Below, in pieces: positions 25,376 to 63,827 of a stretch of 64,000 nucleotides of DNA (position 1 is the first letter of the stretch; every line of letters begins with the position of its first letter). The notes beneath the pieces are model-generated. The model saw only the letters and a list, made by a program, of their open reading frames with translations. It was not told the DNA's origin and did not search any database. A program made the position numbers and the translations under genes. Source of the DNA: Piromyces finnis finn (taxonomy: Eukaryota > Fungi > Neocallimastigomycota); NCBI GenBank assembly GCA_002104945.1, contig MCFH01000033.1:434001-498000 (forward strand), given 5' to 3'.

Positions 25376-25386
25376 ATAACAATTAC
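25376..25386 (+). promoter_or_regulatory. Self-priming PBS of C (ATAACAATTAC)
   Basis: Perfect 11-nt complement GTAATTGTTAT at 25211-25221 in the LTR, 34 nt after TATAAA (25177). Confidence 0.85.
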
Positions 25387-25456: not shown

Positions 25457-25553
25457 CTACCGTGTCTTAGGAAATATCTACCGCGTCTAAAGGAATATCT
25501 ACTGTGTTTTAAAGGCGATCTACCGTGTCTTAGGAAATATCTACCGCGTTTAG
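25457..25553 (+). repeat. 21-bp tandem repeat (~4.6 copies) in the C leader
   Basis: CTACCGTGTCTTAGGAAATAT-like units; unit 1 equals unit 4. Confidence 0.9.
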
Positions 25554-25767
25554 ATTATTATTTTAGTATCATTCAAGCTTCCAACACTATTTGGTTACTG
25601 TATTTAATTTTGTTACTATATTTTTAAGAGCTCGTCTAACACCGTTTGATAGGATAGAGTTACGACGACATCTTAATTAAAATATTGTAAAAAATTAAAT
25701 AAGTAAAATATTAAGCATATTGGAGGAAATCAACCAACTCTTTTCTAACCTCCACTTAAACGAAAAT

Positions 25768-28190: not shown

Positions 28191-28236
<46 letters not shown>

Positions 28237-43200: not shown

Positions 43201-44149
43201 AGGTACTCAATTTACCTCAGACTTTTGGAATCGTTTATGTAATTTGTTAAATATTAAACTTGCTTTTTCTACTGCAAACCATCCTGAAACTGATGGTCAA
43301 ACGGAGAGGGTAAACGGGATATTGGAACAATATCTCCGTTGTTTTATTAACGAAAAACAGAATAATTGGGTTGACTTGTTACCTTTTGCTGAATTTGCTT
43401 ATAACAATACTTTACAGCAATCAATCAACCAATCTCCGTTTTTCGCTAATTATGGGTTCAATCCAAAATTTAACCCTGAAATCCCTTCAGCGAATAGACC
43501 AAATAGAGCTGAACAAAGAATTTTGGATATTAATGAAAACATTAAATTTTTAAAAGTAAATCTTGATCAAGCAAAAGAAACCTACAAAAAGTATGCTGAT
43601 CAAAAGAGAATGGAATCCCCAGATTTCGAAGTTGGTAAAAAAGTTTGGTTATTAAAAGGTATTAATCCTTCAAATAAAAATATCAAAAGAAAACTTGCTG
43701 ATCAAATGCTTGGACCTTTTGAAATAATCAAGAAGGTAAGCCCTTTAGCATTTGAATTAAAACTACCAAACAATTTACGTTGCCACCCTGTTTTTCATGT
43801 TTCGTTATTGGAACCTTATAACGAAAATGAATTTGTAAATAGATCAGTAATGAATAAAAGAAAAAATGTTAAGTTAACTACTGATACTATTGATAGGATT
43901 CCTGATAAGATTATTCAAGAAAGAAATTATCATGGAAAGAAATCTTTCTTGATGACATGGAAAAATCTTGACGAAAATACTTGGATCCCGGAAGATCAAA
44001 TTACAGATGTACAATTGATCCAAGAATTTTATAGAAAAAATAAAAAGTCTAGAAAAGAAAGTCAAGATCAAGTCTATACAAGGAATAACAATGGTATGAT
44101 CAAACATAGATATCAACCATTTGTAATTGATATTCCTTCAAAGAAATGA
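25768..44149 (+). CDS. Element C single gag-pol ORF in segments 25768-25885, 33584-36082, 41955-44149
   Basis: In frame across both TSDs (EANP|DRF; LCNY|YRIF); CCHC knuckle, LIDSGS, YIDD, TDAS, HHCC, DDE, degenerate chromodomain. Confidence 0.9.
26296..26305 (+). promoter_or_regulatory. Self-priming PBS of E (ATAAAATCTC)
   Basis: Complement GAGATTTTAT at 26117-26126, 40 nt after TATAAA (26077). Confidence 0.8.
27189..32829 (+). CDS. Element E gag-pol with C-terminal chromodomain; segments 27189-28194, 28782-28862, 29474-32829
   Basis: In frame once two inserts are removed; [54 protein letters not shown]. Confidence 0.92.
28195..28767 (-). mobile_element. SINE-like non-autonomous retroposon (tRNA-like head, LINE-like tail, A40 tail)
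   Basis: 14-bp TSD CGGTGGTCGACAAT (28181-28194, 28768-28781); T-run 28194-28233; B-box GGTTCGACCCC ~58 nt from the 5' end; tail matches the LINE at 59621-59651. Confidence 0.85.
28863..29468 (-). mobile_element. Solo LTR, C-related family, reverse orientation, inside E protease
   Basis: Minus strand begins TGTAAAGATATC and contains CGATGTAATTGTTATT; perfect TSD TCTAC. Confidence 0.9.
36630..36639 (+). promoter_or_regulatory. Self-priming PBS of F (ATAAAAACAC)
   Basis: Complement GTGTTTTTAT at 36432-36441, 39 nt after TATAAA (36393). Confidence 0.8.
36851..36922 (+). repeat. Degenerate (TTGGACTC)n tandem repeat in the F leader
   Basis: Six GGACTC units visible. Confidence 0.85.
36978..41213 (+). 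CDS. Element F uninterrupted gag-pol (1411 aa) with chromodomain
   Basis: [59 protein letters not shown]. Confidence 0.96.
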
Positions 44150-47100
44150 TCTCGCAGGAGCTCGACTTTAAAGGGCGAGATTGTAAAGATATAATATATA
44201 TCTTTAAATTATTTAATAATTAATTAATAATTATTAAATAATAATTTTGATATTTTAATGAAAAATTATTTATTTATAAAATTTATTATATAAATTTTAA
44301 GGAATAATTAAATAAATATTAATTTTAAAATATCAAAATTGGAAATGAAATTTGGATAAATATTTAAATTAATGGATAATTAAATTTAAATATTTTAAAT
44401 ATTCAAATTAAATCTTAAAAAGTTCTTATTTAATTAAAAATAGTTTAATAACTTTAGCGTAGTTTTAAATTAGTATTTTTTAATAGTAAATATATAATAA
44501 ATAGTATTATTAATATTTAATTAATATATAGGTAATACATGGACTGTATTCAATTTGTAGTTTACTCAAATTGAATCAAAAGTGTATTTAATTAGTTTTA
44601 GTTTAGTTTTATTATTTTATTATTTAATTAAATTAGTATTAAATTAGTTTTGTTTATTTTATATTGAATATATGTATAATTAAATAGAATAGTATATTAA
44701 AATATAATTTGTAAAAAATATAAATACATGTAAAATTTCATAGTTAAACGATGTAATTGTTATTGACTATAATTTAGTTAATAACTAAATAAGAACTAAT
44801 AAAAAAGAAAAAAGAATATAAATAAATTTTGTTTTTGTTTTTAATTTTTTATTTTATTGTGTTTTTGTTTTATTGTAAAAAATTTTATAATCTGTTTTAA
44901 ATTTTAAAACTTTTACACTCTTTATTATAAAAAAGATGAATTATATCTTAAAGTTATTTATAAAGATGAAGATAAAAAAGATATTATTAGTCGTGCTCAT
45001 TCTGTTGGTCATGAAGGTGCTGAAAAGACCACAAATAGAATTTTAAAATCTTATTATTGGCCTGGTATTTGGAATGATGTTAGAATGTGGGTAAAGTCCT
45101 GTAGAAAATGTCAACTTTGTAGACCTAAGCCTTTACCTAAAAATACTGAAGATAATATAAACCCAATTGAACAACCATTTACTAGAGTCGGATTAGATAT
45201 AGTTGGTCCATTACCACTTACTAAACATGGAAATTCTTATATTATTACCCTTGTTGATTATTTCACTAAATGGGTTGAAGCTAAAGCAATTCCAAATATG
45301 AAATCAGAAGAAGTAATATACTAAAATGATGATTGATTTATATGGATCATGGGTTCATTTTGTTTCTCCTCATCACCCACAATCTAATGGTATGATTGAG
45401 AATAGAAACAAAGAAATAGGAAAAACTTTAAGACTCTTAATTGAAAATGAATCTGAATGGGATGAATATCTACCATCTGCATTATGGTCACTTAGAACTA
45501 CCAAAAATTCAAAAACAAAGTTTAGTAGTTTCGAATTATTATATGGTAGAAGAGACACATGGCCATTAGAAATAATGTTTCCTGATATTTATAAAGATCC
45601 TAATGAAACAGAAGAGGAATATATTTTTAGAAGATTTTTAAGGCATCAAAATTGGGTAAAACAAGCTACTGAATATTCTAATCATGCTAATCAATATTGG
45701 GAACATAGAATAGGTTTATCCAAAGCTTTAAAGAAGACTTATAAACCGGGTGATCATGTTATGATAAGATTAATAGGAAGAAGTAAATTAAATCCTTATT
45801 TTTATGGTCCTTATAAAGTTGTTAATAAACAAAAATTTAATACTGTCGTACTTGAAGATCCACATACAGGAAAACTACTTGATAGAAATGTACATATTAA
45901 AAATATTTTTCCTTACGTTCTACCAGAACAAAATTTAACTTCAAGGGACGAAGTTAATTCTTAAAAGGCCGAGAAATTGATAAATAATGAAATTAATAAA
46001 TATAAAATTATTATTATACCTGATTTTTAAGTTAACCCTAAAAGTAACTTAAAACAAGTTATAGTTTAATTAAGTACTTTACCAAAATTCTTAAATAAAA
46101 TTAATCCTAAACACTGCATATATTTTGATTATTGAAAGAAAATAATAAACTTTAATTAATCGAGATCAAAATATATAACTTTTGTTAAATTAATTGTTAA
46201 ATTAAATATTTAATAACTTTCGTTAGTAAATTACACTTTAAAAGTAAACAAATATAATAATTCATGTTATAAAATAATATAATTAAACACCTTTATTAAA
46301 ACATTAAAAATAATTATTACTTTAATTAATTGTAAAATAAACAACTTTTTATATTCTTTAACTTTTAATTATTTCTTTTATTGTTATTTCTAATTACTTT
46401 TATTACTTTTATTGTAAATAGTTATTAATTTTATTGTTTTAATGTAAATAGTTTAAATTTAAAAGAAAATATAAATACATGTAAATATTCTTATTTTAAT
46501 CATTATTATTATTATTAATAAAGAAATATTATATAGTTAGATTAATATTTTATAATTTTAATAATCACTTTTATACTTAAATAAATAAAATTTTAAATAT
46601 TTAAATATTAGAAAAACAAGTGTTTCTAATAAAACAATTTAGTGTTTTAACAAAACAATTTTATTAATTTTTATAAAAACGATTTTAAATCTTAATCAAT
46701 ATAACTTATATAGTTATAACAAAAGATATAATATAATAATCACTTTTTGAAGTAAAATTCAAAATTAAGATTATTATCAAATTATATCATTTTTTGATAC
46801 TCTACTCACATAAAAACATAATAAAAAACTAGCTGAATAAACACGACTTAACCCATAGTAACTTATAATAAAAAAAAACGATAATAACCCTTAAAAATGA
46901 ATGAATAATAATTTTATGAAAATATAACCCTTTTTAAATAAATAATATTCTCTTTATTATATAATAAATTCTGAGTAAAAACGACCTAATAGTGATAATA
47001 ATAAAATAAATTATTAAATAAAATAAACTATTAAATAAAATAAAACGACTTAATCCAATAATGTACTAAAATAATGAAATAATAATAAATAAATAAAAAT

Positions 47101-47930
47101 GAATAAATAAACTAAAAATAAAATGATATACATCAAATTATTAATTCTAGTGTTTATCCAAGTGTTCTTTAGAAATACTCTTAAACTTATAAATTAATAA
47201 ATAGCTAATTGAGTAATTATTACTAAAATGATAAACTTAAAAAACCTGGAAATAGAACAATAATAACAATTCTAAAGATAAAATACAGAACTCTTTTATG
47301 TTTCTGTATAAAATGAGTGTTTATAATAATTGATACTTTTAATATTTTAATTTTGTTATATTTTTATTTTAATTTTATTTTAATTTTATTTTAATATTAT
47401 TTTAATTTCAAATTTTAATTATTTTATTCAAGGTATTATACATTTAATGATAGTCAATGATAATTTATAATAATTTTTCTAAATTTAAACATTTTGAAGT
47501 AATAAGAAAATCAAATAAGTAATATTCTATAATATTTTATAATACTAAGACATAATTTTAATTTATTCTTTTAATTTTAATAAATAATAACAATAGTAAT
47601 AATAATATTTAATAGTTAAAAATAATAATATATGTAATAAATGAAAATGTATAAAAGGAAGATAAAATTCTTCTTTATAAAGGCGGACAATAAATAGAGA
47701 ATAAAAAAGGACAATAAATAAATAATAAATAAATTATAAAATATAATAAAGATTTAATTTAAAACATAATAAGAGTTTATTTTCGAGTTTTGAGTGATTT
47801 ATTTGTTAATTATAAAACATATTTTTATTTTATTTTAAATTTATTGTTTCATCATAATAATATAGAATTTATTATTTATTAAAAACATTATATTATTCAA
47901 AAATATATCAGTCAACGTATCATAAAATTT

Positions 47931-47947
47931 TGGTGGAGAATCCGGGC
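47931..47947 (+). promoter_or_regulatory. PBS of B, complementary to a tRNA-Ala 3' end; repeated at 56612-56628
   Basis: TGGTGGAGAATCCGGGC is the reverse complement of GCCCGGATTCTCCA-CCA (U70 consistent with the Ala G3:U70 identity element). Confidence 0.75.
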
Positions 47948-49332
47948 GTGACCAAAGATATGAAAAAGAATAATATTAATAATAATACTAATAAATTCTA
48001 AAATATTAAGCGTTTATAAAAAAACAGTTTACACTTAATTTAATTTTTATTATATATTCTTCTATAATAATAATAATATTAATAATAAAAAAAAAAAAAT
48101 TTTTAATTATATATATAAAAGGAAATATATATATAATTTTAAAATTATAAAAATTTTAATATTTCTAAAAAAGAGTATTTAAGAAATTAAAGACTAAGTG
48201 ATTAATATTTAGTCATATACGTTACACAAGGAAGAAAATTTCTATAATTCCTATAATCGTTTCCGTTCTTATTATTAATAAGGATAACTTAATCCATTCA
48301 GTTAGTTTGTTATATTTCTGATCTATCCAGGGGATCAGTGTGATAGTAAAAACTAGGAAAAGAGTTAATCCTTCTCAGCAGTTAATAATAAGATCATAAT
48401 TTGAATTAAATATAAAATTTTTATTTCTTAATTAAGAGAATAAATTAATTCACCAGTGCTTATTTGTAGAGGCGGCTGTTGAATGAAAAACTTCTTAGCT
48501 TAAGGCTACCTACATATTAAGCGAATAATTTATTTCAATATTCTTAATTATTGACTAAAAATTTTTTAATTTAAATTATAACAAAAAAAAAAAAAAATAG
48601 TAAGTATATATTGGTTGTTGTTATATAATAGACTGAGTTCGAAATATAGCAATAATTAAAGCAATTATTATTTAGAGAGTAAGGCGGGTACACACTCAGC
48701 AAGAGGGAGTAGGTATACTAGACAGCCTTTATTTGATTCTCAAGTAAGAGAGTAGCAAGTTCGGCTGAAAATCCTGAGTAAGGAGCAGAACTTTGGAAGT
48801 GAAAATTTATCATTTAAAGGTGGGAGTTTAGTAGGGATCCGAAAGTCTTTATAGTCACTGTGCCTCGGGTGCCTAAAAATAAATAAATAATTGTAACAAT
48901 ATATATAAACTATTATAATTGAATTAAATAAATAAAATAAATAAATAAAAAAAATATAAATATACATATTCTTCTAAATTCCTAATTGCAAAAAAAAAAA
49001 AAAAAAAAAAAAAAATTTATCCTTTCATTCTTCCTTGATCATTTAAAAATCGAGAGTTAATAAATTACATTTAAATTTATAATTAGATACTATTTCGTAA
49101 AGTTTCTATTATTTCTGACTAATAATAATAATATAATATATTTTCTATAAAATACTTCTCTGATCTGATCTCATCCAATATTAAATTTCATTTATTTATA
49201 TAATTTTTATAATTTATATAATCCATATAATATATAACTTATACAATATATATATTTCTGCTGTATTACTTATCTTTCATTCTTTTATTTTTCTTTAATA
49301 TACTTTTCAATTTCTAAATAACTTTCTTTAAT

Positions 49333-49364
<32 letters not shown>

Positions 49365-49603
49365 TATTATAAATTTTATATTATTTTATATTAATTTACT
49401 TTATCAATTTATTAATTATTTATATATTCAATTACTTTCATTTGAAATTTTATAAATATTACTAATATTATTATATTATTAAAGTTAAAACAAATATATA
49501 TAATATATAAATTCCAATTATTTTCTTTATTACCATTTATTTCAAATTAAATTATACTTTTATTTTAATTATTTTACTTTATAAGAAATTTATATATACA
49601 AAA

Positions 49604-50769
49604 ATGAAGATCAGTGAAATCACTAAAATGCTACCTAGAATTGGTAGTCAAGATAGGGATATCGAAAGCTGGGCTGAAGAATTCAGCAGAATTATGGACC
49701 TATCTGACATCAATGATCCCAAAAAGATATTCGCTTGGGCAAAGGAATGTGTCCAAGGTAGATTAAAAGGAATTATTGATGACTTAAAAACAGAAAGTGA
49801 TACTGAAACAAATTATCCTAGCCTCAAGAAAAATGCTTCAATGTTAAGTCTCTAAAAATTAGAAGAGGAGAAAGTATTAAGGATTTCAACTGGAGATACG
49901 GAAACTTATATAAAAATCTTAATGTTGGATCCCAACTATTCATTACTGTTAAAGATTATACTAATTCCATCATTTCTCGTCCTTTCTTTAGAACTCAATT
50001 AATCACTGCCCAACCTAAAGATATAGAAGCTGCTTTTAAGGTTGCCGAATTAGCTGAATCAGCAACTGAAGTTCCTCAGTATCATAATGTTAATATGTTT
50101 ACTGATAGCCAACCTTACTTTGATCCATATTAAAACCAAAATTATAATTTATTTACTCAACATAGTGGTGGAACTAACTATAATTATTTTAATAATAATG
50201 ATAGTCCATATACTTATAATGGATATTATAATAATAACTATAATAATAATAACTATAATAATAATTATGATAACAATAATAATTATAATAATTATAATAT
50301 GCGATTCAATGGAAACTATAATATGAGAAATCAACGTTTTAACAAAAGGAATAATTACAGAAATAATTACCCAAATAATTTCAATACTAATAATTATAAT
50401 AATTATAATAATAATTATAATAACTATCAAGGTGATCAAAATGCATATAATAATGGTTATAATAAATACCCTAATAATTCTAATACATTTAGTAACAATA
50501 ATTATTCCAATATGGAAGAAAATAAATCATATCAAAATTCTAATAATTATTCTAATAATGCTAATAAAATGAATACTACTACTAATAAAGTTAATCAAAC
50601 CACACCTCAAAGTCAAGTGAATATGTTTAACCAGTCTCAAAGAAATAAATGCTTCAGATGTCAAAAGGTAGGCCACAAAATGCAAGATTGCAAATATACG
50701 TTCCAAGAACTTGCAGAAATGGAAAAACAAGGCCTTATAAACTCTAATCAAAATCATTTAAACTTATGA
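49604..50769 (+). pseudogene. Element B gag, frameshifted
   Basis: Split ORFs 49604-49855 and 50299-50769; knuckle CFRCQKVGHKMQDC. Confidence 0.8.
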
Positions 50770-50790
50770 GTGGGAGAAGGAATACTCCCA
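50757..50790 (+). promoter_or_regulatory. -1 ribosomal frameshift signal of B
   Basis: T TTA AAC, 7-nt spacer, TGGGAG/CTCCCA stem; pol is in the -1 frame. Confidence 0.8.
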
Positions 50791-53700
50791 TAAATCAAAC
50801 CAATACTACTTTTGCTACAATATCAGTACCAGTAAATGAAGAAATTACAATTCCAGTAATAAGAAAAGCTAAAAAGAATACTGATATTAAACCATATAAA
50901 AGAACTACCAAAGAAAAATTAAGTGATAATCCACAACCAATTAGAGTTCCAAGTAATGAGACTAGAGAACCATTAAATAATACTTATGAAGATATAATTG
51001 AAGTTCCAAATAATGAAGTAGAAATGGAGACTGTAATTGAAAATGAAAATAATAATAATAATAATAAGAATAATAATAATAATAATATTAATAATAATTA
51101 TAATAATAATATTAATAATAATATGAGTATAAATAATGACACTAATATAAATAATAATGAAAGTAATAAAATAGATAATAACATTAAGAATAATAATATT
51201 AATAATAACACTAATTCAACAGAAGCATTAAAACAATTAGATCCTTCATTCATTAATCAATCCACTATAGATAAAGCTAAACAAAAAAATAAAAAAGAAC
51301 GAGAAAAAGAAATAATTGAACTAGCAAAGGAGATTGAACTTCCGAGTCAAAAGGAAAAAAATGTATCAAATGAGAAAGGTACAAAAAGATTAGTTATTTC
51401 AGCAGATCAAGAAAAATATAATATAACTAAAGATATAGGTGAAAAATTTGCAAACATAACAATAGGCCAACTACTTGAAATTAGTCCTAAATTGAAAACA
51501 GAACTTTCAAAAGCACTAAAATTTACTAAAATTATTGAAGATGAATCTACAATTCTTTCTACCATAAGAAAAGATAAAGTCGTGAAATCAAAATGTAAAA
51601 TAGAAGGAATAGAAACTACTGTATATTTGGACTCTTGTTCATCTATAAATATGATTACTAGAAGATTCTTATTAGAAAATAATATTCCATTAAAACCAGT
51701 TTCAAAAATTAGAGAAACTATATATCAAGCTTATTCCAATACTACTATTGAGTCGCATCTATATGAAATTGAAATTACTATTGGTAATATAACATCTAAA
51801 GAAATATTTAGACTTATTGAAAAAGAAGATATATTCCAGGTCTTAATTGGTGTAGAAACTTTAGCTAATATGAAATTAATTATGGACTTTTCTGATCATA
51901 CTTTATATCAGAAAACTGATGATATCCACAAAATTGGATCTTTTGAAAGTATTAATGAAATGAATCAAACTAATTTAATAGAAGAATTTGATGAAGAAAT
52001 TAATCAAGATGCATTAATATATTACTTAACTAGTCAGAATGATAAATATCAAGATTTAGAAATTAAAACTACTAGTGATTCTAAATTACAACTTATTAAT
52101 AAAATAGTTGATGAAACACAAAAAGAAGCAAAAGACCAATTGAAGAATCTTTTAATAACTAATATAGATGTTTTAGCTAATGATACTGATGATTTGGGTA
52201 AATCAAAATTATTAGCTCATGAAATTAAATTAAATCAAGATGATCCTATTAAACAGAAAATGTATCGTATTTCTAATAAAGAACATATGGAAATTCTAAA
52301 AGAAGAAATAGGAAAGCTTTTAAAGAATGATTTAATAGAACCATCACAATCATCTTGGTCTTCTCCAGTTTTATTAGTACCAAAAAAGAATGGAAAATGG
52401 AGAATGTGTGTAGATTATAGAAAATTAAATTCTATAACAATAAAAGATTCATATCCACTTCCATATATTGAAGAAATATTATTTTCTATTGATAATAATG
52501 TAAAATATTTATCTACATTGGATTTATTCTCTGGTTTTCATCAAATACCAATGAAAAAAGAAGATATTGATAAAACATGTTTTACAACAATATTTGGAAA
52601 TTATAATTACAAAGTAATGCCTTTTGGTTTATGTAATGCTCCAGCAACCTTTCAAAGAGAAATGAACCGTATATTTCTACCACTTATTGGAAAATGTTTA
52701 TTTGTTTATATGGATGACCTTTTAGTATTTTCTCCAAGTCTTGAACAACATATATTAGATCTTCAAAAGGTTTTTAATATAATAAAAGGAAATGGTATAA
52801 AAGCAAATCTTTCTAAATGCCATTTCTTAAAACAAGAAGTAGAGGTCCTTGGTCATATTCTATCAGTAGAAGGTGTCAAACCAGTTGAAAAGAAAATTGA
52901 AACTATTAAAAATTGGAAGTCACCAACAAACCTTACACAGCTAAGATCATTTTTAGGAGCTATAGGACATTACAGGAAGTTTATAAAAGATTTTGCCCAA
53001 ATTGCTCATCCATTATTTAAATTATTAAAAAAGGGTATGAAATTTGAATGGACATCTGAAACCGAAGAAAGTTTCCAAATACTAAAAGAAAGACTGATTA
53101 AGTCTCCTATTTTAAAATATCCTGACTATGATAAAAATTTTATTATAAGAACTGATGCATCACTTAATGGTATTGGTGGTGTATTACTTCAAAAAGATGA
53201 AAATAATGTTGAACATCCAATTCATTATGTTAGTAGGTCTTTAAACGATAGTAAAATTAATTATAGTATAACTGACTTAGAAGGAACCGCAGCTTTTTAT
53301 TGTTGTAAGAAATTTAAATCTTATATAAGTGGGAATAAAGAAGAAACGATATTATATACTGACCATAAACCTTTAGTTGGCTTATTTAATAATAAAGAAC
53401 CAAATAATGCTCGTCAAACACGCTGGGTTACTACACTTAGTATACTCAAGGTAAAAGTTAAATATGAACAAGGAAAGAAAAATGTAGTTGCTGATGCATT
53501 ATCTATACTAATACCAGGCGATAAAAATGATATAAAAATTTCACTAGCTACTTTTAATAATAATGATGATAAAGCTACTAAAAATAATATTTTAAATTCA
53601 AATAAAGATTTTTACTCTAAAAATAATGAAAATATAGTTTATTCTTGTAATTTTAATAATTCATGTATTAATGATAATGAAATAAATAAAAATAATAATA

Positions 53701-55493
53701 TTAATCCCTATATTGATAAAAATATTGACTTAAATAAAAATTTTTGTGTTAATGAAAGTGTAAATTCAATTAAATATTCTAAACTTAATAATGTTGATTT
53801 AAATAATTATATCTCTATTAATAATAATTCACATGGAAATAAAAATAAAAATATAAATTTTAAAAATGATATTGATAAAAGCCAGAATAATAATTATTTT
53901 AAAGATAATGAAATAAATAAATTATCTGACTATGATAATGATATTGTTTATAATAAAGTAATGAATAGTGATATCAATGACTTAAATGATACTCGCAACT
54001 TAAATAATAAAATAGATATAAATAAAAATGATTTTCCTAAATTAAATGAAAATACTACAACTAGTTATTATAATTATAACATCCATAATTATCATAATAA
54101 TATTCATTCATATGATCCATCTAATATTTTTAATATTGATAAAAATAATTATTTTAATATAGAAAATAAAATAAAAATATCCTCAATTCCATCTGAAAAT
54201 GAAAAAGGTGAATCAATAAATAATTATACTGACTCAGAAGCGGTACTTGTAACTGACACATCTATTGATACTAGTGAAAATAATTCAAATGAATATCCAG
54301 GAAGTAATAAAATTAAAGAATTTCTTAAAAAGAAAATTATCTTAATAAATGGAATAAAATATTATAAAGATGGAGACAATATCAGAAAAGTTATTGAAGA
54401 TAAAGAAGAGAAAATAGAATTACTATTAGCTGCACAATCAATAGGTCATGAAGGATTTTATAAAACTTATAACAGATTAAAGAAAAATTATTATTGGAAA
54501 AATATGGCTAAAGATGTAGAACTACTTGTAAAAACTTGCCATGATTGTCAATTAAAGAGACCTCAACCTATTAATAGTGGTACTGAATCATTTGCTACAA
54601 AGCCAGGTCTACCATTCACTAGAGTTGGTTTAGATATTATTGGACCACTACCAATAACTAAAAATAATAATAAATATATAATAGTACTTGTAGATTATTT
54701 TACCAAATGGGTTGAAGCTGAACCTCTAAAATCAATTGAATCTACGGATGTTATAAAATTTCTTTCAAATGTATTTTCTAGACATGGTACTCCAGAAATA
54801 TTAATTACTGATAATGGTCCACAATTTACTTCTGATGCTACTAAAGGCTTTCTTGATTTATATGGTATATATGTTCAATATTCTAGCACTTATCATCCAG
54901 AAACAAATGGACAAGTAGAAAATCGTAATAGAGAAATTGTTAAAAATATTCGACTATTAGGAGACTCAAATAAAGAATGGGACGAAGTTCTTCCATCGGC
55001 TTTATGGGCTCTACGTACTTGTAAAAATGAAGTAACAAAATTTTCTAGCTTTGAATTATTATATGGTTGTACTGACCTTCAACCATTTGAACTTATGATA
55101 GAATACAATAATAAAAATGAATATGAAACTCCAGAAGAATATTTAATAAATAAATTTAATACACATTGGGAATGGATTATTGAAGTTACCAAAAATATTC
55201 AGAATGCTAATAAATTATGGGAAAATAGAAGAAAACAAAAAGCTTCAATGAATACTGCATTTCCAGCCGGTGATTTAGTACTTGTTAGAAATTTTTCAAG
55301 AAGAAAGTTAGATCCATTTTTCATGGGATCTTTCCGTATTATTAAAATGGAATTTAATACTACTACATTATGTGACCCTATTAGTGGTGCAATAGCTGAA
55401 AGAAATGTTCATCAAAAGAATTTAGTTCATTATCATACTTGGCACAATGAGACTTCCAGGGACGAAGTCCAAACTCAAGTGGGGGGATCTTGA
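50766..55493 (+). CDS. Element B pol (1575 aa): PR-RT-RNase H-[Asn-rich insert]-IN
   Basis: YLDSCS (PR), YMDD, TDAS, QSIGH..CHDC, LDIIGP/ITDNG/VENRN. Confidence 0.92.
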   Translation: MSGRRNTPINQTNTTFATISVPVNEEITIPVIRKAKKNTDIKPYKRTTKEKLSDNPQPIRVPSNETREPLNNTYEDIIEVPNNEVEMETVIENENNNNNNKNNNNNNINNNYNNNINNNMSINNDTNINNNESNKIDNNIKNNNINNNTNSTEALKQLDPSFINQSTIDKAKQKNKKEREKEIIELAKEIELPSQKEKNVSNEKGTKRLVISADQEKYNITKDIGEKFANITIGQLLEISPKLKTELSKALKFTKIIEDESTILSTIRKDKVVKSKCKIEGIETTVYLDSCSSINMITRRFLLENNIPLKPVSKIRETIYQAYSNTTIESHLYEIEITIGNITSKEIFRLIEKEDIFQVLIGVETLANMKLIMDFSDHTLYQKTDDIHKIGSFESINEMNQTNLIEEFDEEINQDALIYYLTSQNDKYQDLEIKTTSDSKLQLINKIVDETQKEAKDQLKNLLITNIDVLANDTDDLGKSKLLAHEIKLNQDDPIKQKMYRISNKEHMEILKEEIGKLLKNDLIEPSQSSWSSPVLLVPKKNGKWRMCVDYRKLNSITIKDSYPLPYIEEILFSIDNNVKYLSTLDLFSGFHQIPMKKEDIDKTCFTTIFGNYNYKVMPFGLCNAPATFQREMNRIFLPLIGKCLFVYMDDLLVFSPSLEQHILDLQKVFNIIKGNGIKANLSKCHFLKQEVEVLGHILSVEGVKPVEKKIETIKNWKSPTNLTQLRSFLGAIGHYRKFIKDFAQIAHPLFKLLKKGMKFEWTSETEESFQILKERLIKSPILKYPDYDKNFIIRTDASLNGIGGVLLQKDENNVEHPIHYVSRSLNDSKINYSITDLEGTAAFYCCKKFKSYISGNKEETILYTDHKPLVGLFNNKEPNNARQTRWVTTLSILKVKVKYEQGKKNVVADALSILIPGDKNDIKISLATFNNNDDKATKNNILNSNKDFYSKNNENIVYSCNFNNSCINDNEINKNNNINPYIDKNIDLNKNFCVNESVNSIKYSKLNNVDLNNYISINNNSHGNKNKNINFKNDIDKSQNNNYFKDNEINKLSDYDNDIVYNKVMNSDINDLNDTRNLNNKIDINKNDFPKLNENTTTSYYNYNIHNYHNNIHSYDPSNIFNIDKNNYFNIENKIKISSIPSENEKGESINNYTDSEAVLVTDTSIDTSENNSNEYPGSNKIKEFLKKKIILINGIKYYKDGDNIRKVIEDKEEKIELLLAAQSIGHEGFYKTYNRLKKNYYWKNMAKDVELLVKTCHDCQLKRPQPINSGTESFATKPGLPFTRVGLDIIGPLPITKNNNKYIIVLVDYFTKWVEAEPLKSIESTDVIKFLSNVFSRHGTPEILITDNGPQFTSDATKGFLDLYGIYVQYSSTYHPETNGQVENRNREIVKNIRLLGDSNKEWDEVLPSALWALRTCKNEVTKFSSFELLYGCTDLQPFELMIEYNNKNEYETPEEYLINKFNTHWEWIIEVTKNIQNANKLWENRRKQKASMNTAFPAGDLVLVRNFSRRKLDPFFMGSFRIIKMEFNTTTLCDPISGAIAERNVHQKNLVHYHTWHNETSRDEVQTQVGGS

Positions 55494-56603
55494 TACGCTA
55501 CTCACATAAAAACATAATAAAAACTAGCTGAATAAACACGACTTAACCCATAGTAACTTATAATAAAAAAAAAACGATAATAACCCTTAAAAATGAATGA
55601 ATAATAATTTTATGAAAATATAACCCTTTTTTAAATAAATAATATTCTCTTTATTATATAATAAATTCTGAGTAAAAACGACCTAATAGTGATAATAATA
55701 AAATAAATTATTAAATAAAATAAAACGACTTAATCCAATAATATACTAAAATAATAAAATAATAATAAATAAATAAAAATGAATAAATAAACTAAAAATA
55801 AAATGGTATACATCAAATTATTAATTCTAGTGTTTATCCAAGTGTTCTTTAGAAATTCTCTTAAACTTATAAATTAATAAGTAACTAATTGAGTAATTAT
55901 TACTAAAATGATAAACTTAAAACCTGGAAATAGAACAATAATAATAATTCTAAAGATAAAATACAGAACTCTTTTATGTTTCTGTATAAAATGAGTGTTT
56001 ATAATAGTTGATACTTTTAATATTTTAATTTTGTTATATTTTTATTTTAATTTTATTTTAATTTTATTTTAATATTATTTTAATTTCAAATTTTAATTAT
56101 TTTATTCAAGGTATTATACATTTAATGATAGTCAATGATAATTTATAATAATTTTTCTAAATTTAAACATTTTGAAGTAATAAGAAAATCAAATAAGTAA
56201 TATTCTATAATATTTTATAATACTAAGACATAATTTTAATTTATTCTTTTAATTTTAATAAATAATAACAATAGTAATAATAATATTTAATAGTTAAAAA
56301 TAATAATATATGTAATAAATGAAAATGTATAAAAAGGAAGATAAAATTCTTCTTTATAAAAAAGGTGGACAATAAATAGAGAATAAAAAAGACAATAAAC
56401 AGATAATAAATAAATTATAAAATATAATAAAGATTTAATTTAAAACATAATAAGAGTTTATTTTCGAGTTTTGAGTGATTTATTTGTTAATTATAAAACA
56501 TATTTTTATTTTATTTTAAATTTATTGTTTCATCATAATAATATAGAATTTATTATTTATTAAAAACATTATATTATTCAAAAATATATCAGTCAACGTA
56601 TCA

Positions 56604-56742
56604 TAAAATTTTGGTGGAGAATCCGGGCGTGACCAAAGATATGAAAAAGAATAATATTAATAATAATACTAATAAATTCTAAAATATTAAGCGTTTATAA
56701 AAAAAAACAGTTTACATTTAATTTAATTTTATTATATATTCT
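56604..56742 (+). mobile_element. Second, truncated copy of the B leader (tandem element remnant)
   Basis: Matches 47923-48062 including the PBS. Confidence 0.85.
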
Positions 56743-57461
56743 TGTAAAGATATAAAGTATATCTTTAAATTATTTAATAATTAATTAATAATTATTGAAT
56801 AATAATTTTGATATTTTAATGAAAAATTGTTTATAAAATTTATTGTATAAATTTTATGGAATAATTAAATAAAGATTAATTTTAAAATATCAAAGTTAGA
56901 AATGAAATTTGGATAAATATTTAAATTAATGGATAATTAAATTTAAATATTTTAAATATTCAAATTAAATCTTAAAAAGTTTTTATTTAATTCAAAATTA
57001 GTTTAATAACTTTAGCGTAGTTTTAAAATAAGTTTTTTTTAATAAGAAATATATTATAAATAGTATTATTAATATTTAATTAATATATAAGTAATACATA
57101 GACTGTATTCAATTTGCAGTTTACTCAAATTGAATCAAAAGTGTATTTAATTAGTTTTAGTTTAGTTTTATTATTTTATTATTTAATTAAATTAGTATTA
57201 AATTAGTTTTGTTTATTTTCTATTAAATATATGTATAATTAAATAGAATAATATATTAAAATATAATTTACAAAAAATATAAATACATGTAAAAATTCCT
57301 TAATTAAAACGATGTAATTGTTATTGACTATTATTTAGTTAATAACTAAATAAACTTAATAAAAGAAGATATTTAAAAAGATAATTTTAACTATATTTTG
57401 TTTTTATTTTTTGGTGTTGTTTTATTGTAAAATTTTATAATCTGTTTTTGAGTCTTATACA
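56743..57461 (+). mobile_element. Orphan C-related LTR
   Basis: Aligns with 24640-25375; no matching TSD and no ATAAC PBS on the right, so the right junction is rearranged. Confidence 0.85.
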
Positions 57462-57470
57462 CATTTATAT

Positions 57471-58568
57471 AAAAGAAGTCGACCTGACTCTATCCTATCA
57501 ACTGGTATCAGCAAATTATTACAATGAAATTAAATTTTTTAAGTTCGTTTTCGTATTACTTCATAATATTTTAATATATTATTTAATATACTCCTTAATT
57601 GTATTTATCTAATTTAATTAATAATATATTATCCTTAAATATATTTTATTTATTTAGTTATTTAATCAAATTTATATTGTATTTTCATATTAAAGAAGTC
57701 GACCTGACTCTATCCTTTAAAAAAGGTGTAATCCAGTTCTTTATTTAGTCTAAAATTAAATTATTTTAAAATTGATTTTAAATATTAAATTAAATCATAA
57801 ATTTATAAAATTAATTTAATTTATAATATTTCTAATTTAATTTATTATATACTATTTCCCAAAAAGATGTCGATCTGACTCTGTCCTCTAAAAAGGTGTC
57901 ATCGAAATCTTATTATAATAATATAGAATAATTTATTTAACTAACTTTCCAAATTTATTGCTTTTAATTTTATTGTAAAATTCTAATTCATTTCTTAATT
58001 TTGTTATATTTAATTTATTATATACTATGTTTAAAAGATATCACTCAGACTCTATCCTATCCTATCAAACAGTGTCGAGCGAGGTCTTTTATAGCATGTA
58101 ATAAATTTATTTCAATAAAATAACTTATTCCTTCTTTTAATTAATAAATATCAAAAATTTAATTCTCATATTTCTCAATGTATTTTAAATAATCCTAAAA
58201 TTATTATATACTATGTTTAAAAGATGTCGCTCAGACAGACTCTATCCTATCAAACGGTGTCGAGCGAGGTCTTTTAAGTATATAATAAATTCATTCCAAA
58301 ATAATAATTAATAATTCATTCAAATAAGTGAAATCAACATACTAATTCACTTATTTCTCAATATATTTAAATAATTTTTAAAATTTGATTAACTTTTTCT
58401 CAATTTTCTTTCTTTTTAAATAAGTTTTAATTTTCTTACTTCTCAATTAATTTTTTGATTTAATTTACACTTTTAATTGTATATATCCAATTTAATTTAT
58501 AATATACTATGTATAAAAGATGTCGCTCAGACTCTATCCTATTAAACGGTGTCGAGCGAGTTCTTTTT
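57471..58568. repeat. Array of six ~50-nt hairpin motifs with 120-245 nt AT-rich spacers
   Basis: Copies start at about 57471, 57692, 57861, 58033, 58219, 58515; core GACTCT(A/G)TCCT..(C/A)(G/A)GT(G/A)T. Confidence 0.9.
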
Positions 58569-58724
58569 ATAGTATATTATAATTAAATTTAATTTTAAAA
58601 GAGCATCATCAAACAAGAGTATTTCATAAATATATTTCTATTAGTATTACAGATAGATTTAATATATAAAAACATTGTTCCATACAGTAGAGTTACACTT
58701 ATTTCAATTCCAATATAAAAAAGA

Positions 58725-58855
58725 AAGTTTCACAGAGTAGAAGTTCCACAAGCAAAGTTCCACGAGATTCGTTCAAAAGAATTCCACGAAGAGAGGATTT
58801 TACAAGGTAGTGTTCCACAAATAGGTAAAAATTCTACAATTATTGTTCCACAAAG
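58725..58855. repeat. Cluster of about eight GTTCCACA-like motifs
   Basis: AAGTTCCACA, AAGTTCCACG, AATTCCACG, TGTTCCACAA twice, plus variants. Confidence 0.7.
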
Positions 58856-59036
58856 TAGGGTTTCTTTTTGAATTTTAGTTGTAAATTTTCTTTAAAAATT
58901 CTAATTTTGGTTTGTTGTTATTAAATTCGATTTGCTTTCATAATGTTTTCATTTGAAGAAATATTAACATTGAACCCTGTGTACGGAACATTAGGAATGT
59001 TCCTTTGCTATATCGGTACGACGTCGGAGCTCTTGA

Positions 59037-59400
59037 TTATGTTAGGTATCTTACTAAACCTATCAAAAAGTAGCTACTAATGATAGGGATTGTTTTAGTA
59101 AGAAAAGCCGCAAGACCCTCTACATATAGAACATGAGACCCCAATGAACTGTAAAGCTGTTCATTCAAATGTCTTTGTTCCGCTTTATCAATTTGTAGCT
59201 TGTCATAAGCTAAAGTTCCACCAAGAAGGAACATAAAAATATAATTATAAATTGTTTTTCTTACTTCCATTTCAGGGAGTAAGTAATTTATAAAGTATAT
59301 ATTTCCACCAAAAGGGACCGAATTCATTGAAATTATTCATTTTTTTTTTAACGGCATCAAATATTTTAAACTTTATTATTAATTTAATTAAAATTATAAT
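59037..59400 (-). pseudogene. Remnant C-terminus of a second LINE ORF
   Basis: IFMFLLGG..LAAFLTKTIP resembles IYKFLLGG..TAELLTKIMP at 59636-59863. Confidence 0.55.
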
Positions 59401-59540: not shown

Positions 59541-62500
59541 TTTGACTTCCAATGGGACACCGAGCCAAAGATCAAAATTTTATCATGGAACAAAATTATG
59601 ATCTCCATTGGTTGCGCTGGCCCTCCTGGCCTGTCTTACTGTTTCTTCAGCATTGACCATTGCTGGCCAATAGCAAAAGGCATGATTTTGGTTAGAAGTT
59701 CCGCGGTTACCGTCAAGAATGGTGTTCCTTCATTAGTACCAGATTGAATCTGACACTTGCAAAGTTCTTTCCATTCCCTTGAATTGTAATTGATAATATT
59801 AAAACTTCTTCCCCCAAGAAGGAATTTATATATTTTACTGCACATACTAGAATTATCATACACATTAATATTTCACCGGATTATTAGAACTATTACCATT
59901 ATTAACTAAATTACTATCTAAATTAGAATTATTGTCTTCACTAATGCTATTATTACTAATATTATTACTATTATTATTATTACTATTACTACTACTATTA
60001 TTGTTATTATTATTATTGTTACTATTACTATTGTTACTATTATTACTACTATTGTTACTATTACTATTAATATTATTACTATCTCTACTGATATTAACAT
60101 TTTCATTATTATTGATAGGACTGTTGGAATTACGTTGACTGAAAAAATTTAATAGCTGGACTATGGAATCATAATGTTTAATACGGATATCTCTAAATGT
60201 TGGACAAACTAATAACCAATGCTTAATACTTTGTGCACCACACTTGCAACATGGACAGTAGTTAGGACAAACTAGATCAACAAATTTAGCAGCTTTGGTA
60301 ACTCTAGCATCCAACTTGGATCCGCTTCTTGCTTTCAATAGCCAGTAGAAGCCATAGGCAAACTCTGGGTACTCATAACATAATTTAATAAAATCTATAG
60401 TTTCAATAAATTTATTATCATCATAATATTGCGCTTTGATTGAATTCCCTTTGAGATCTTTCCAATAAAAGTTTTTAACTGCTTTAACATCTCCATGTTT
60501 CTTTAATTTTTTATCAAGTGTCCTACCTGATTTGCACCACGTGTATTTTCTAAATTTATGAATGTAATTGACAAGGTATGAGATAATACAATTCGAGTTT
60601 TTCCATTTGTTAAAACATCTAACCTGAGCTAACGCACATTTGGCTGACAATGGAGGAATATTCAAATCTTTTGAGATAGAGTATAAAGATATAAACGATA
60701 CAGCTTTATGAACTCCGGCAATCCATCGTATTCCTTTGTTAACATGCTTCTGAGCAATCCTAGACCTAGCTTTGTTGGATCCAAGTAATGGTGCAAAGTA
60801 TGAAACTCTGCTAATCACTTGTGAGTTAAGTACTAGCTTTTTGAAGGGAATAGGAATATTAGGATTTCTTAAGAATTTACTGACTGAAAAAAGTCCTTTC
60901 AAAACTTTGTTATTAAGAGTTTTAATAACTGGTTTAAGGGACAGATTCTTATCAAATGGAACACCAAGATAAGTATAACAATCAGTAGTTGGAATGGGTT
61001 GTCCTGCTAAGTAAAATGTTGGATCTCTCTTGATCTGATTTTCTATTGATTCAGGACGAATCACCATCGTTGAACATTTCTGGATACCAAATTCCATTTC
61101 ATTATACAAGGCCCATTCATTAACTCTTCTAAGCATCTTTTTTAAGCATCCTCTTGTTGGAGCACAAATAACCATATCATCTGCAAAAAGTCCACCACAG
61201 CATTGAGTGTCACCTAAACTGACTCCTAGATCTTCGCACTCTTTAAATATATCATTAATAAAGAGATTAAAGAGAATAGGAGAAAGAGGGCAACCTTGAC
61301 GGACTCCTTTCTTCACATCAAAAGATTTCGAGAATTGTCCATCTAATTTGACATTAGCCTTAGATGTTAAATATAAATTTTTGATGAATTGTAAACTCTT
61401 ACCTCGGATTCCTAAACAATCTAATTTATGGAGAATATTACCGATTGGGACTGAATCGTATGCTTTCCTGAGATCTAAAAAGGCCAAATATGTCTCTTTA
61501 TTATCTAATTGACGTCTACGGCATATTTCTTGGATTGAAATGAAAAGACTGATACTTTCTTCCTTTTTTCGAAAACCAAATTGTTCAGGTCTAATGAAAT
61601 TATTCTTTAAACCATATTCTGAGATTCTAGTGGTGACAATTTTGGAAATCAACTTAATACCATTATTGATAAGTGATATACCTCGATAGTTATCACAATC
61701 TGTCAAATCTCCCTTCTTAGGAATAGAAACAATACTGGATTCATTCCATGAGTTGGGGAAGTCTCCATCCCAAATACGGTTGAATAATTTAAGAATAAAA
61801 TTTAAACCATGAGCATCATTATCTGAAGTGGTATTACCGGAAGAATTATTACCTGTAGCATTATTAGAATCATTACTTGATGGAATTAATGCTTTGTAAA
61901 GTTCAATTGGAATACCATCCGGACCTGATGCTTTATAATTTGGAGTAGAGAGGATAGCTAACTTGACTTCATCAATACTAATATCTTGGTTGATATCCCA
62001 TTCATCAAGCATAGGAAGTGAAAAACGTTTATTCGTTGGTTCTTCATACCAATGATCCAAATCAAGACTTACACCACTTGGATCTGATGCAAGGTTTTCG
62101 AAATGATCATGCCACACCTCTAGTTGTTCTTCTGTAGCAACAACTAATTCTCCATTTTTATTTTTAATTGGTTGAGCAATAAAGAAAGAATCTTTTCCAA
62201 TTTTTGCAGTTTTCTTGATCCATTTCCAGGCCTTCTTAGGATTATGACTCTTCATATACTCACATCCTGTTTTAATCCAATGAAGATATTCTTGTTTCCT
62301 AAATTCATTACATCTTTTGTGGATGTAATCGATGAGCTTACGGTAGATTTTAATCCTTTTAATAAATTCATCTATATCATAAATTCTTTCTTTTTTAAAT
62401 CTCTTATACAACTTCATTTTGATTTTTTGAAGATTAAAAATTTGTTGTGAAATATGAAATGAAGACTTTATAACATTATTTGCTGAGGTAATACTGAGCT

Positions 62501-63827
62501 CGTCTGCAATTGAAAAAGCAGTTGAAGTAAACTCTTTGGAAAGTTCATCTGTAGAAACATTAGGATCGTTGAATTTTGCTGAAAGTATTTGGAATTTATT
62601 ATGACTGAGAATAGATTCCTTTTCCTCAATACATTTTAATCTATTCCATTTCAGAATTTTCTTAGGAACATTAAAGTCATTAGAAAAATCTTCCATAGGA
62701 ATAATTTTACCATTAATAAGAAGTGGCTTATGGTCTGAAACAGGATAAAAATTATTTATAAATGATCCTGAGTGAATAAGATCTTTCATCTTCGAGTTGA
62801 TAAGAGCATGGTCAATGTCGGAAGATTGATCATCTCGAGTCCAAGAGATAGTCGACCCTCTAAGCGGAAGAATTTCCAAATCTCCTAATCCATTAGTTGA
62901 TAACCAGTTGGATAATTTAACTTTAGACATATTAAAATCACCAACAAGAATCGATGGATGGGATGAATGAGTTTGTAACCACAAGCGAACTTCTAACTTT
63001 GCATGATCAACATAGATGTTGTGATGACTATGAGGCATATAAACATTTCCAATCGAGCATTTGAATCTATTCCAAAGACTAAAAGTATAAATAGAAATAA
63101 TATACTTTCCAGAGAAGTTTTCAAGTGAGGCTTGACATGAGGAAGAATCGTTGCTATTATTATTATTATTAAAGTCATCGTTATTAATGGATGATGCATC
63201 AGAGGAATAAGTAGAACTATTACTAGATGGCTGTGAAACTGAAGAACTATCAACTATTGAACTGTTATCAGAGTTGATAGAACTATTAGAATTAATTGTT
63301 GAATGTTGAGATTGAAATTGTGTTTGCTGTAGATCTGGAATATTTTCATGATGGGAAACTTGTTGAAGATCCTGTTGAAGATCTAGTTGAAGATCGGATT
63401 GTTGATGAGATTGTTGAACTGATTGTTGAAATGATTGTTGAATAGAATGTTGATGTTTATTAGAAACTAAAATTTTACGTTTGAGAGTGGAAAAAGTGTA
63501 TTTGTGATTCCTTCTACTACGAGCTGAAAAGGAAATTGAGGTAACTGAAAGTTTCTTCTTTAACATGTGTAAGATTTTAATACAATCTTTCGATGAACCA
63601 TGAACCTTGACTAAGAAAAAGTGATCATTGAAAGTCTGAAAATATTTAACACTAATAACTGAATTAAATTTATCTTCTAGAATAACCTCGAGTTTTTCCC
63701 ATAGCATATTTACTGACCATGATCGAATACCACGGATAAAGAAGGAGCGAATATCATCTAAGGGGATACCATAAGACCGGGTACCACGTCTGATATAATT
63801 CTTGTCTTTAATATAAAGGACTGACAT
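59541..63827 (-). mobile_element. Non-LTR retrotransposon (LINE, APE+RT); true 5' end not resolved
   Basis: See the ORF; 3' end inferred at GGAAGTCAAA (59541-59550) by analogy with the SINE end GGAAGTT(A)n. Confidence 0.88.
59865..63827 (-). CDS. LINE polyprotein (1320 aa): APE endonuclease, RT, C-terminal CCHC; continues in another frame at 59863-59636
   Basis: GNVYMP, VGDFNM, DIDHAL, SDHKPL (APE); LDLRKAYDSV, RQGCPLSP, FADD, YLG (RT); CPCCKCGAQSIKHWLLVC. Confidence 0.92.
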   Translation of the reverse strand: MSVLYIKDKNYIRRGTRSYGIPLDDIRSFFIRGIRSWSVNMLWEKLEVILEDKFNSVISVKYFQTFNDHFFLVKVHGSSKDCIKILHMLKKKLSVTSISFSARSRRNHKYTFSTLKRKILVSNKHQHSIQQSFQQSVQQSHQQSDLQLDLQQDLQQVSHHENIPDLQQTQFQSQHSTINSNSSINSDNSSIVDSSSVSQPSSNSSTYSSDASSINNDDFNNNNNSNDSSSCQASLENFSGKYIISIYTFSLWNRFKCSIGNVYMPHSHHNIYVDHAKLEVRLWLQTHSSHPSILVGDFNMSKVKLSNWLSTNGLGDLEILPLRGSTISWTRDDQSSDIDHALINSKMKDLIHSGSFINNFYPVSDHKPLLINGKIIPMEDFSNDFNVPKKILKWNRLKCIEEKESILSHNKFQILSAKFNDPNVSTDELSKEFTSTAFSIADELSITSANNVIKSSFHISQQIFNLQKIKMKLYKRFKKERIYDIDEFIKRIKIYRKLIDYIHKRCNEFRKQEYLHWIKTGCEYMKSHNPKKAWKWIKKTAKIGKDSFFIAQPIKNKNGELVVATEEQLEVWHDHFENLASDPSGVSLDLDHWYEEPTNKRFSLPMLDEWDINQDISIDEVKLAILSTPNYKASGPDGIPIELYKALIPSSNDSNNATGNNSSGNTTSDNDAHGLNFILKLFNRIWDGDFPNSWNESSIVSIPKKGDLTDCDNYRGISLINNGIKLISKIVTTRISEYGLKNNFIRPEQFGFRKKEESISLFISIQEICRRRQLDNKETYLAFLDLRKAYDSVPIGNILHKLDCLGIRGKSLQFIKNLYLTSKANVKLDGQFSKSFDVKKGVRQGCPLSPILFNLFINDIFKECEDLGVSLGDTQCCGGLFADDMVICAPTRGCLKKMLRRVNEWALYNEMEFGIQKCSTMVIRPESIENQIKRDPTFYLAGQPIPTTDCYTYLGVPFDKNLSLKPVIKTLNNKVLKGLFSVSKFLRNPNIPIPFKKLVLNSQVISRVSYFAPLLGSNKARSRIAQKHVNKGIRWIAGVHKAVSFISLYSISKDLNIPPLSAKCALAQVRCFNKWKNSNCIISYLVNYIHKFRKYTWCKSGRTLDKKLKKHGDVKAVKNFYWKDLKGNSIKAQYYDDNKFIETIDFIKLCYEYPEFAYGFYWLLKARSGSKLDARVTKAAKFVDLVCPNYCPCCKCGAQSIKHWLLVCPTFRDIRIKHYDSIVQLLNFFSQRNSNSPINNNENVNISRDSNNINSNSNNSSNNSNNSNSNNNNNNNNSSSNSNNNNSNNISNNSISEDNNSNLDSNLVNNGNSSNNPVKY

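Follow-up and report, generated by a model that had tools for sequence, protein, structure and literature searches.

A multiplied, covarying hairpin in the leader of a gene-less LTR retrotransposon of Piromyces finnis finn and its possible recognition by Gag

The closest described counterparts of the structure considered here are the packaging signal Psi of human immunodeficiency virus type 1 (HIV-1) and murine leukaemia virus (MLV) and, in Ty1, the region formed by the 5' leader and 5' GAG. In these systems, as in the elements described below, hairpins lie between the site of primer binding (PBS) and gag and reach into early gag, purines in the loops are left unpaired, and Gag carries a CCHC motif. 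A second set of relatives comprises elements that have kept their long terminal repeats (LTRs), PBS and polypurine tract (PPT) after losing their coding sequence, namely large retrotransposon derivatives (LARDs), TRIMs (terminal-repeat retrotransposons in miniature), BARE2-type parasites and mouse VL30. The packaging signals of Ty3/gypsy elements are poorly defined, and the capture of helper proteins by gene-less LTR elements is mostly inferred. Here we report an array of six hairpin units at positions 57467-58570 of a stretch of 64,000 nucleotides (nt) from the gut fungus Piromyces finnis finn (assembly GCA_002104945.1, contig MCFH01000033.1, positions 434,001 to 498,000 of the forward strand), hereafter the window, and the non-autonomous, array-bearing element to which it belongs, which we named the B element (its LTR being LTR-B).

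The array is almost certainly a truncated, partly decayed piece of the leader array of a B element. As to how such arrays arose, we lean, by somewhat more than an even chance, towards the explanation that the array is what remains of the leader of a gene-less LTR element, in which a hairpin that would be captured by the Gag of helper elements was multiplied in the parasite. In our literature search we met with no account of LTR leaders or LTR elements of this kind from gut fungi, nor of a multiplied packaging hairpin in a non-autonomous LTR element.

The six-unit array and the B element

The units had been picked out in a sequence-only reading of the window, which took them for a self-contained, undescribed locus on the plus strand. 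That the array is real was borne out by counting and by scoring. Its core, GACTCTRTCCT, was seen six times on the plus strand against 0.48 expected by shuffling (seven matches were reached in none of 100 shuffles), and the units scored 54-77 bits with R1, a covariance model made from representative hairpin units and used to score both the window and the genome. The GC content of the units is 35-46% and that of the spacers, which are 119-240 nt long, is 8-14%. Below, the strand is that of the element sense, which is the minus strand of the window, U1 to U8 are unit types, and folding free energies (dG) are in kcal/mol.

58511-58570, minus: w6, U1 type, first unit in element sense; one loop substitution, rod intact; R1 77.2 bits; sense dG -31.4 over 104 nt
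58215-58278, minus: w5, U2 type; 4-nt insertion in the 3' arm; R1 66.2 bits
58029-58093, minus: w4, U3-U5 type; 5-nt loop duplication and three C-to-T changes; R1 53.8 bits
57858-57917, minus: w3, U6 type; stems TCGA-TGAC / GTCA-GA-TCGA, internal loop ACAGA; R1 65.8 bits
57687-57747, minus: w2, U7 type; inner stem CCTTT/AAAGG; 5' arm mutated, rod lost; R1 67.9 bits; dG -10.2
57467-57526, minus: w1, U8 type, last unit; 5' arm mutated; R1 68.1 bits; dG -13.6

The 60-nt hairpin of w3 is the canonical U6 letter for letter. The stem changes of w4 leave G-U pairs on the sense strand (dG -30.5 in sense versus -23.4 in antisense), and the insertions in units 4 and 5 are small. The rods of w1 and w2 have been lost, with dG values of -13.6 and -10.2 compared with about -31 in the best units, and the lower stem of w1 was cut off by the adjoining LTR. 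The array and the sequences next to it are laid out as follows.

57457-58864, minus: B-element fragment, consisting of the end of the leader short-repeat block and the six-unit array; reverse-aligned to positions 1026-2851 of the C13 copy
58600-58864, minus: short direct-repeat block, about ten copies of a unit containing TGTGGAAC; all B-element leaders have such a block ahead of their first hairpin (in element sense)
56742-57452, plus: LTR-A copy adjoining the distal end of the array and inverted relative to the array sense; self-primer GTAATTGTTAT at 57314-57324; 91% identical to 24639-25375 and 44181-44917

The C13 copy (6.1 kb) served as the canonical B-element reference. The fragment in the window is without both LTRs, the first 236 nt of the leader and the post-array region, and the missing leader and LTR were absent within 10 kb downstream. 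Its identity to young B copies is about 81-93%, so that it is more diverged from them than they are from one another. With both LTRs gone and two rods out of six no longer folding, the window copy is dead.

All genome searches were made in the assembly of the source genome, which is 56.5 Mb in 232 contigs and very AT-rich. The array is not unique to its locus. A 91-nt unit of it, matched at 98-99% identity, recurs at 28 or more further sites of the assembly, each with additional units beside it. A covariance-model search of this assembly returned 150 matches of 61-80 bits with R1, that is, at least 150 hairpins, and all of them lay within such arrays. The LTRs, leader, array and post-array region were collinear at more than 20 loci. 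In the C13 copy the order in element sense is a 788-bp LTR (TG...CA), a leader of 236-253 nt, short TGTGGAAC-type repeats, the array, about 2.5 kb of further sequence, a PPT and the second LTR.

Open reading frames (ORFs) in the B element do not exceed 77 aa. The approximately 2.5 kb after the array are decayed pol, in which a remnant of a protease motif (tblastn E 0.029) and a remnant of the integrase/chromodomain end (70% identical, as DNA, to window positions 43304-43616) could be recognized. These pol remnants and the PPT fix the sense of the element, and the array is thus the reverse complement of the plus strand on which a locus had been proposed. Direct TG...CA LTRs with a target duplication, together with a PBS, a PPT and no intact gag or pol, place the B element as a non-autonomous, LARD-like Ty3/gypsy derivative. 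A match to a miniature inverted-repeat transposable element (MITE) or a Helitron terminus was not found, and the hairpin units are internal to the LTR element, 550-2050 nt from the 5' LTR, in every intact B copy. The array nonetheless belongs to a known class of mobile element.

In complete B copies the two LTRs were 99.75-100% identical, and four of the five complete copies had 5-bp target duplications (those listed for the canonical copies are CTACC, CAGTA, ATTAA, ATAAT and ATAAC), which indicates that B copies transposed very recently. As the B element is both numerous and young, it must be mobilised in trans. No autonomous element with LTR-B was identified in the assembly; one leader-only match, at C24:312655, was not inspected. 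The number of units per copy varied, with eight in 12 copies, seven in three, six in three and five in one.

Other traces of the B element were also observed. In one B copy (L028, C13:757715-760805) an A-type element is inserted between the array and the leader, which resumes about 7.2 kb away at C13:766405-766654. Nested insertions also divide the B copies on C207, C227 and C195; in some cases a D-type LTR lies directly against the array. The window itself also contains a solitary LTR of this element.

22759-23546, plus: solo LTR-B, inserted in another element; 99.4% identity with each LTR of the C13 copy; empty site seen in C13

Hairpin structure and homologues in protein-coding elements

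In element sense each unit consists of a lower AU stem, a two-part GC stem, a 1x5 internal loop in which a single A stands opposite AYNGA, and a short apical stem-loop. This agrees with the architecture given in the sequence-only reading, which had an outer stem in two parts with a small bulge in it, then a 1x5 internal loop and an inner CC/GG stem, and which had also seen that copies 2 and 3 use other stems. When 22 nt were added on each side, TATACTAT paired with ATAGTATA and the T-run paired with AAAAGA, giving a rod of about 90 nt with a dG of -28 to -32 kcal/mol in good units. The upstream box TATACTAT and the T-run had been read as promoter and terminator; since they pair as the lower stem, they are not promoter or terminator boxes.

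A homologue in the leader of a protein-coding element, already pointed out in that reading, proved genuine, and further homologues were found in a second protein-coding family, the D type.

25621-25680, plus: A-type hairpin, present once in the leader of the A-type element, which codes for protein; R1 73.6 bits
24639-25375, plus: A-type 5' LTR, 737 bp; 72-75% identical to LTR-B
L033 4040-4099, and also L032 7193-7252, L042 1382-1441 and L046 4947-5006: hairpin X of the D type, within gag codons 39-59

The gag ATG is at 25768, 92 nt beyond the core of the A-type hairpin, which ends at 25675. D-type elements have a 610-bp LTR equal to window positions 28860-29468 and a gag-pol ORF of 1530 aa (L033), and they carry two hairpins, of which Y stands upstream of the gag ATG, at a distance of about 150 nt, and X begins 115 nt inside gag. 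The stretch of hairpin X therefore doubles as protein code and RNA structure. The B units U1-U5 were 81-83% identical to the A-type hairpin. U7 was about equally like A (0.70) and X (0.71), and its 3' arm was nearly identical to that of X. Searches with gag showed that helpers of both types are abundant, with at least 69 D-type copies at 96-100% identity, many of them in ORFs of 1530-1580 aa, and further groups of at least 20 copies at 79% and at least 25 copies at about 50%, the latter being the A-type group. The D-type Gag has a zinc knuckle of the form CX2CX4HX4C (CCHC).

The three families also share a primer site. Immediately behind the 5' LTR stand 11 nt (ATAACAATTAC) that can pair without mismatch with an 11-mer of the LTR, and this holds for families A, B and D. 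The same 11-nt site was seen in all three LTR families (window copy 25376-25386), with the complement about 175 nt before the LTR end.

Self-primer 11-mer: LTR-B position 612; LTR-A position 573 (window 57314-57324); L033 3384-3394, with the PBS at 3517-3527

In addition, a block of short direct repeats that differs from family to family follows the primer site and precedes the first hairpin. Many of the repeats have a CTACC-like core, and they may represent a second conserved leader module.

25457-25550, plus: leader repeat block, five copies of about 21 nt
58600-58864, minus: leader repeat block, about ten copies of about 20 nt
L033 3556-3690: leader repeat block, three copies of about 48 nt

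Comparison of the hairpins showed that the internal loop is nearly constant and that the stems vary while remaining paired. Across the A, X, Y and B types a single A stands opposite AUAGA, ACAGA, AUGGA or AUCGA, or opposite AACGC in some Y copies. The helix adjoining the loop occurs as GAC/GUC, UGAC/GUCA or UAAC/GUUA, all of which pair. The inner stem occurs as CC/GG, CCUUU/AAAGG, CUG/CAG or CUGUA/UACAG, and the outer stem as UCGCUC/GAGCGA, UCGUC/GACGA, UCGA/UCGA or UCGAC/GUCGA. When 31 distinct sequences were aligned by fitting to the model, 85.7% of the cells paired and two-sided changes were present in 10 of the 16 pairs. The covariation score was 0.274, compared with 0.144 in shuffled alignments (none of 500 shuffles reached 0.274) and at most 0.10 with slid partners. 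These structural comparisons rest on hairpins from this one genome. Within a single element the eight hairpins were on average 80% alike, whereas the spacers were 57% alike and shuffled spacers 53%. The spacers are thus near the shuffled level, which indicates that the hairpins were held while the rest of the repeat unit decayed.

The hairpin was assigned to the sense strand mainly because its position and orientation between the PBS and gag are constant in three element families, and also because of the X and Y variants. Folding energies, considered together with G-U counts, favoured the sense strand for X and Y (energies of -33.4 versus -27.6, -29.4 versus -20.8 and -19.9 versus -13.7 kcal/mol), and also for the decayed units of the window, but not for U1-U5.

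Comparison with known RNA families gave no relative. At the gathering score, Rfam identified only two tRNAs in the whole window, and at E values of up to 10 there were three chance matches, far under threshold, in window positions 57300-58700. Self-cleaving ribozymes (hammerhead, hepatitis delta virus-like, twister, pistol and hatchet) had no gathering-score match in the window; the best ribozyme match was RAGATH-1, with 18.8 bits against a cut-off of 56.3, and lay inside a spacer. A kink-turn was also considered. The long strand of the internal loop would provide a 3-nt bulge plus GA, but there is one unpaired A on the short strand and the GUC/GAC register is fixed by covarying pairs, so that, judged from the sequence, only one sheared G-A pair is possible and the kink-turn was rejected. 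The motif (1x5 loop, A opposite AYNGA) matches no described family.

Possible roles of the hairpin

We consider it very probable that the hairpin acts in cis, as a structured RNA of its retroelement. The B element has lost gag and yet keeps and multiplies the hairpins, which argues against a role in the translation of gag and in favour of the RNA itself having a function. As in Psi, the structured RNA is located in the 5' leader or in 5' gag, as seen from the positions of the A-, D- and B-type hairpins, from their folds and from their covariation. Its position in the leader or 5' gag, its exposed purine-rich loop and the zinc-knuckle Gag of the D-type elements point to recognition by Gag for packaging. 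We put the chance that it is a packaging signal specifically at about even.

Based on these features, we propose that the hairpin would form on the sense transcript of the element and would be recognized in cis by the Gag of the helper elements, the nucleocapsid (NC) part of which has a CCHC knuckle. Such recognition would mark the RNA for packaging into virus-like particles. By multiplying the signal, the gene-less B element would compete for proteins encoded elsewhere, and we infer that it is here that any benefit of multiplication would lie. More tentatively, and with rather less than an even chance of being right, we speculate that the 1x5-loop hairpin is a specific Gag/NC module of self-priming chromovirus-like elements, and that B out-competes its helpers with up to eight copies, possibly as subtypes suited to two helper families.

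Several points weigh against this explanation. The alignment used for covariation was fitted to the model, and it represents few independent lineages (A, X, Y and four B unit types). The two strands of the B units have folds of much the same stability, antisense folds of U1-U5 being about 3 kcal/mol more stable than the sense folds. No copies were retrieved from other species, and a metagenome scan with a gapped 16-base pattern, which was too loose, listed 80 contigs that were all chance matches (best R1 score 21.5 bits). In twelve young 8-unit copies, variable sites were found at 7 of 408 hairpin positions (1.7%) versus 25 of 971 spacer positions (2.6%), a difference with p = 0.43 in a test without power. 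In addition, tandem repeats in the untranslated regions of retrotransposons can also expand neutrally.

The last two points would favour a neutral origin, in which a single hairpin is functional in autonomous elements and the five- to eightfold array is a by-product without selective value. The range from five to eight units among near-identical copies is in keeping with this, as it suggests that units are easily gained and lost. Nevertheless, the hairpins of one element are far more alike than its near-random spacers, the diverged U6, U7 and U8 keep the fold by means of different stems, and the 8-unit form is the commonest (12 of 19 copies); we therefore regard neutral expansion as quite unlikely. 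The same anatomy, covariation and position would also suit some other cis-acting task of the RNA, such as dimerisation, nuclear export or stability in the manner of a constitutive transport element (CTE), or reverse transcription and strand transfer, with multiplication boosting the step concerned. For dimerisation, a palindrome, GUCGAC, that could pair between two RNAs is present in some 3' arms (U7, U8 and X), but it is absent from U1-U5 and from the A-type hairpin, and no apical loop is self-complementary. A direct role in priming is unlikely as the hairpin is 300-700 nt from the PBS. Taken as a whole, we hold a role in one of these other steps to be unlikely, though deserving of consideration.

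The two remaining explanations do not involve the transcript of the element as a folded RNA. If the units were protein sites on double-stranded DNA, forming an enhancer or insulator array, the layout of short GC-richer motifs and AT-rich spacers between the 5' LTR and gag would be the expected one; on the other hand, compensatory stems and constant asymmetric loops are the signature of a folded single strand, and one homologue is inside gag coding sequence, which makes this explanation highly improbable. Small-RNA genes of the RNA polymerase III or microRNA-like kind, or ribozymes, on the plus strand had been put forward in the sequence-only reading. Rods of about 40 bp do resemble small-RNA precursors, and TATA-like and T-run motifs do stand beside units 3-6. 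These boxes, however, are the halves of the lower stem and have no counterpart in the A, X and Y homologues, no Rfam family, ribozyme or other, matched the units at threshold, and the units always travel inside an LTR element; we give such genes or ribozymes next to no credence. Of what that reading had offered, a protein-binding RNA motif or an amplified packaging signal is the interpretation that the evidence favours, while the stand-alone locus, the boxes, the small-RNA genes and the ribozyme fell away.

Several neighbours of the array and of its relatives were also annotated. The gag of the A-type element is broken after about 39 codons by a nested LTR element at 25886-33578 (LTRs 25886-26295 and 33141-33578, 93.6% identical), and the gag frame resumes directly after it. 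Upstream of the array on the plus strand, what had been taken for long interspersed nuclear elements (LINEs) is, at 46794-56746, a full-length Ty3/gypsy LTR element (reverse transcriptase-RNaseH-integrase) with 1279-bp LTRs that are 96.6% identical and a pol ORF of 1575 aa. The minus-strand ORF of 1320 aa at 59865-63827 has only a Pfam reverse-transcriptase domain and probably belongs to a non-LTR element. Tandem repeats of 169 bp are present at 64508-64847 of the extended contig. Near the proximal end of the B-element fragment, after 72 nt, lies a repeat that is unrelated to the array, for which a solo LTR or a short interspersed nuclear element (SINE) are both conceivable.

58937-59285, no strand assigned: repeat, about 350 bp long; present in the genome at least 40 times, at 90-92% identity

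Comparison with known systems

Taken alone, the window offers a modest result, a dead fragment, and it still explains a puzzling array and removes the ribozyme and small-RNA-gene readings of it. The wider interest lies in the B element. A covarying hairpin that occurs once or twice in helpers and five to eight times in a young, numerous parasite is a concrete and testable candidate for a recognition signal, and the natural series of 5, 6, 7 and 8 units permits a test of dose effects. If the proposed role is correct, it would be a case of natural packaging-signal amplification by a parasitic LTR retrotransposon and would add a new protein-binding RNA motif.

With respect to Psi and the Ty1 leader, the hairpin has no kinship in sequence or in Rfam, it is repeated five to eight times in a gene-less derivative, and its binding by Gag and its part in packaging are predictions. 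LARDs, TRIMs, BARE2-type parasites and VL30 have, to our knowledge, not been described with a multiplied leader hairpin, and their cis signals are single.

Self-priming is known for Tf1 and Tj1 (PMC4600332). The host elements of the hairpin share with Tf1, Tj1 and sushi this self-priming, which is predicted here from the primer site, a Tf2-type SH3 domain and a chromodomain in the integrase region. The likeness concerns the host element and not the hairpin, as no such leader hairpin is described in Tf1.

The Su(Hw) cluster in the 5' untranslated region of Drosophila gypsy is a similar array of motifs; there the motif is a duplex-DNA site with a conserved sequence, whereas here the stems covary. 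Retrozymes (PMC4918200) are also gene-less LTR elements with a small structured RNA motif. In retrozymes this is a hammerhead in the LTRs, whereas in the B element the motif is in the leader, has no hammerhead core and has no Rfam match.

For the repetition itself, the nearest parallels are in RNA viruses. In alphaviruses the packaging signal consists of several stem-loops in a row, and how many there are influences the specificity of packaging (PMC5869531); coronavirus signals are reported to comprise repetitive structural motifs (PMC8206606). The alphavirus nsP1 signal comprises eight GGG-tipped stem-loops, and the B array likewise repeats similar stem-loops. These viruses are unrelated replicons with unrelated proteins, and in the B element the repeats are 150-290 nt apart and were multiplied in the parasite rather than in the helper.

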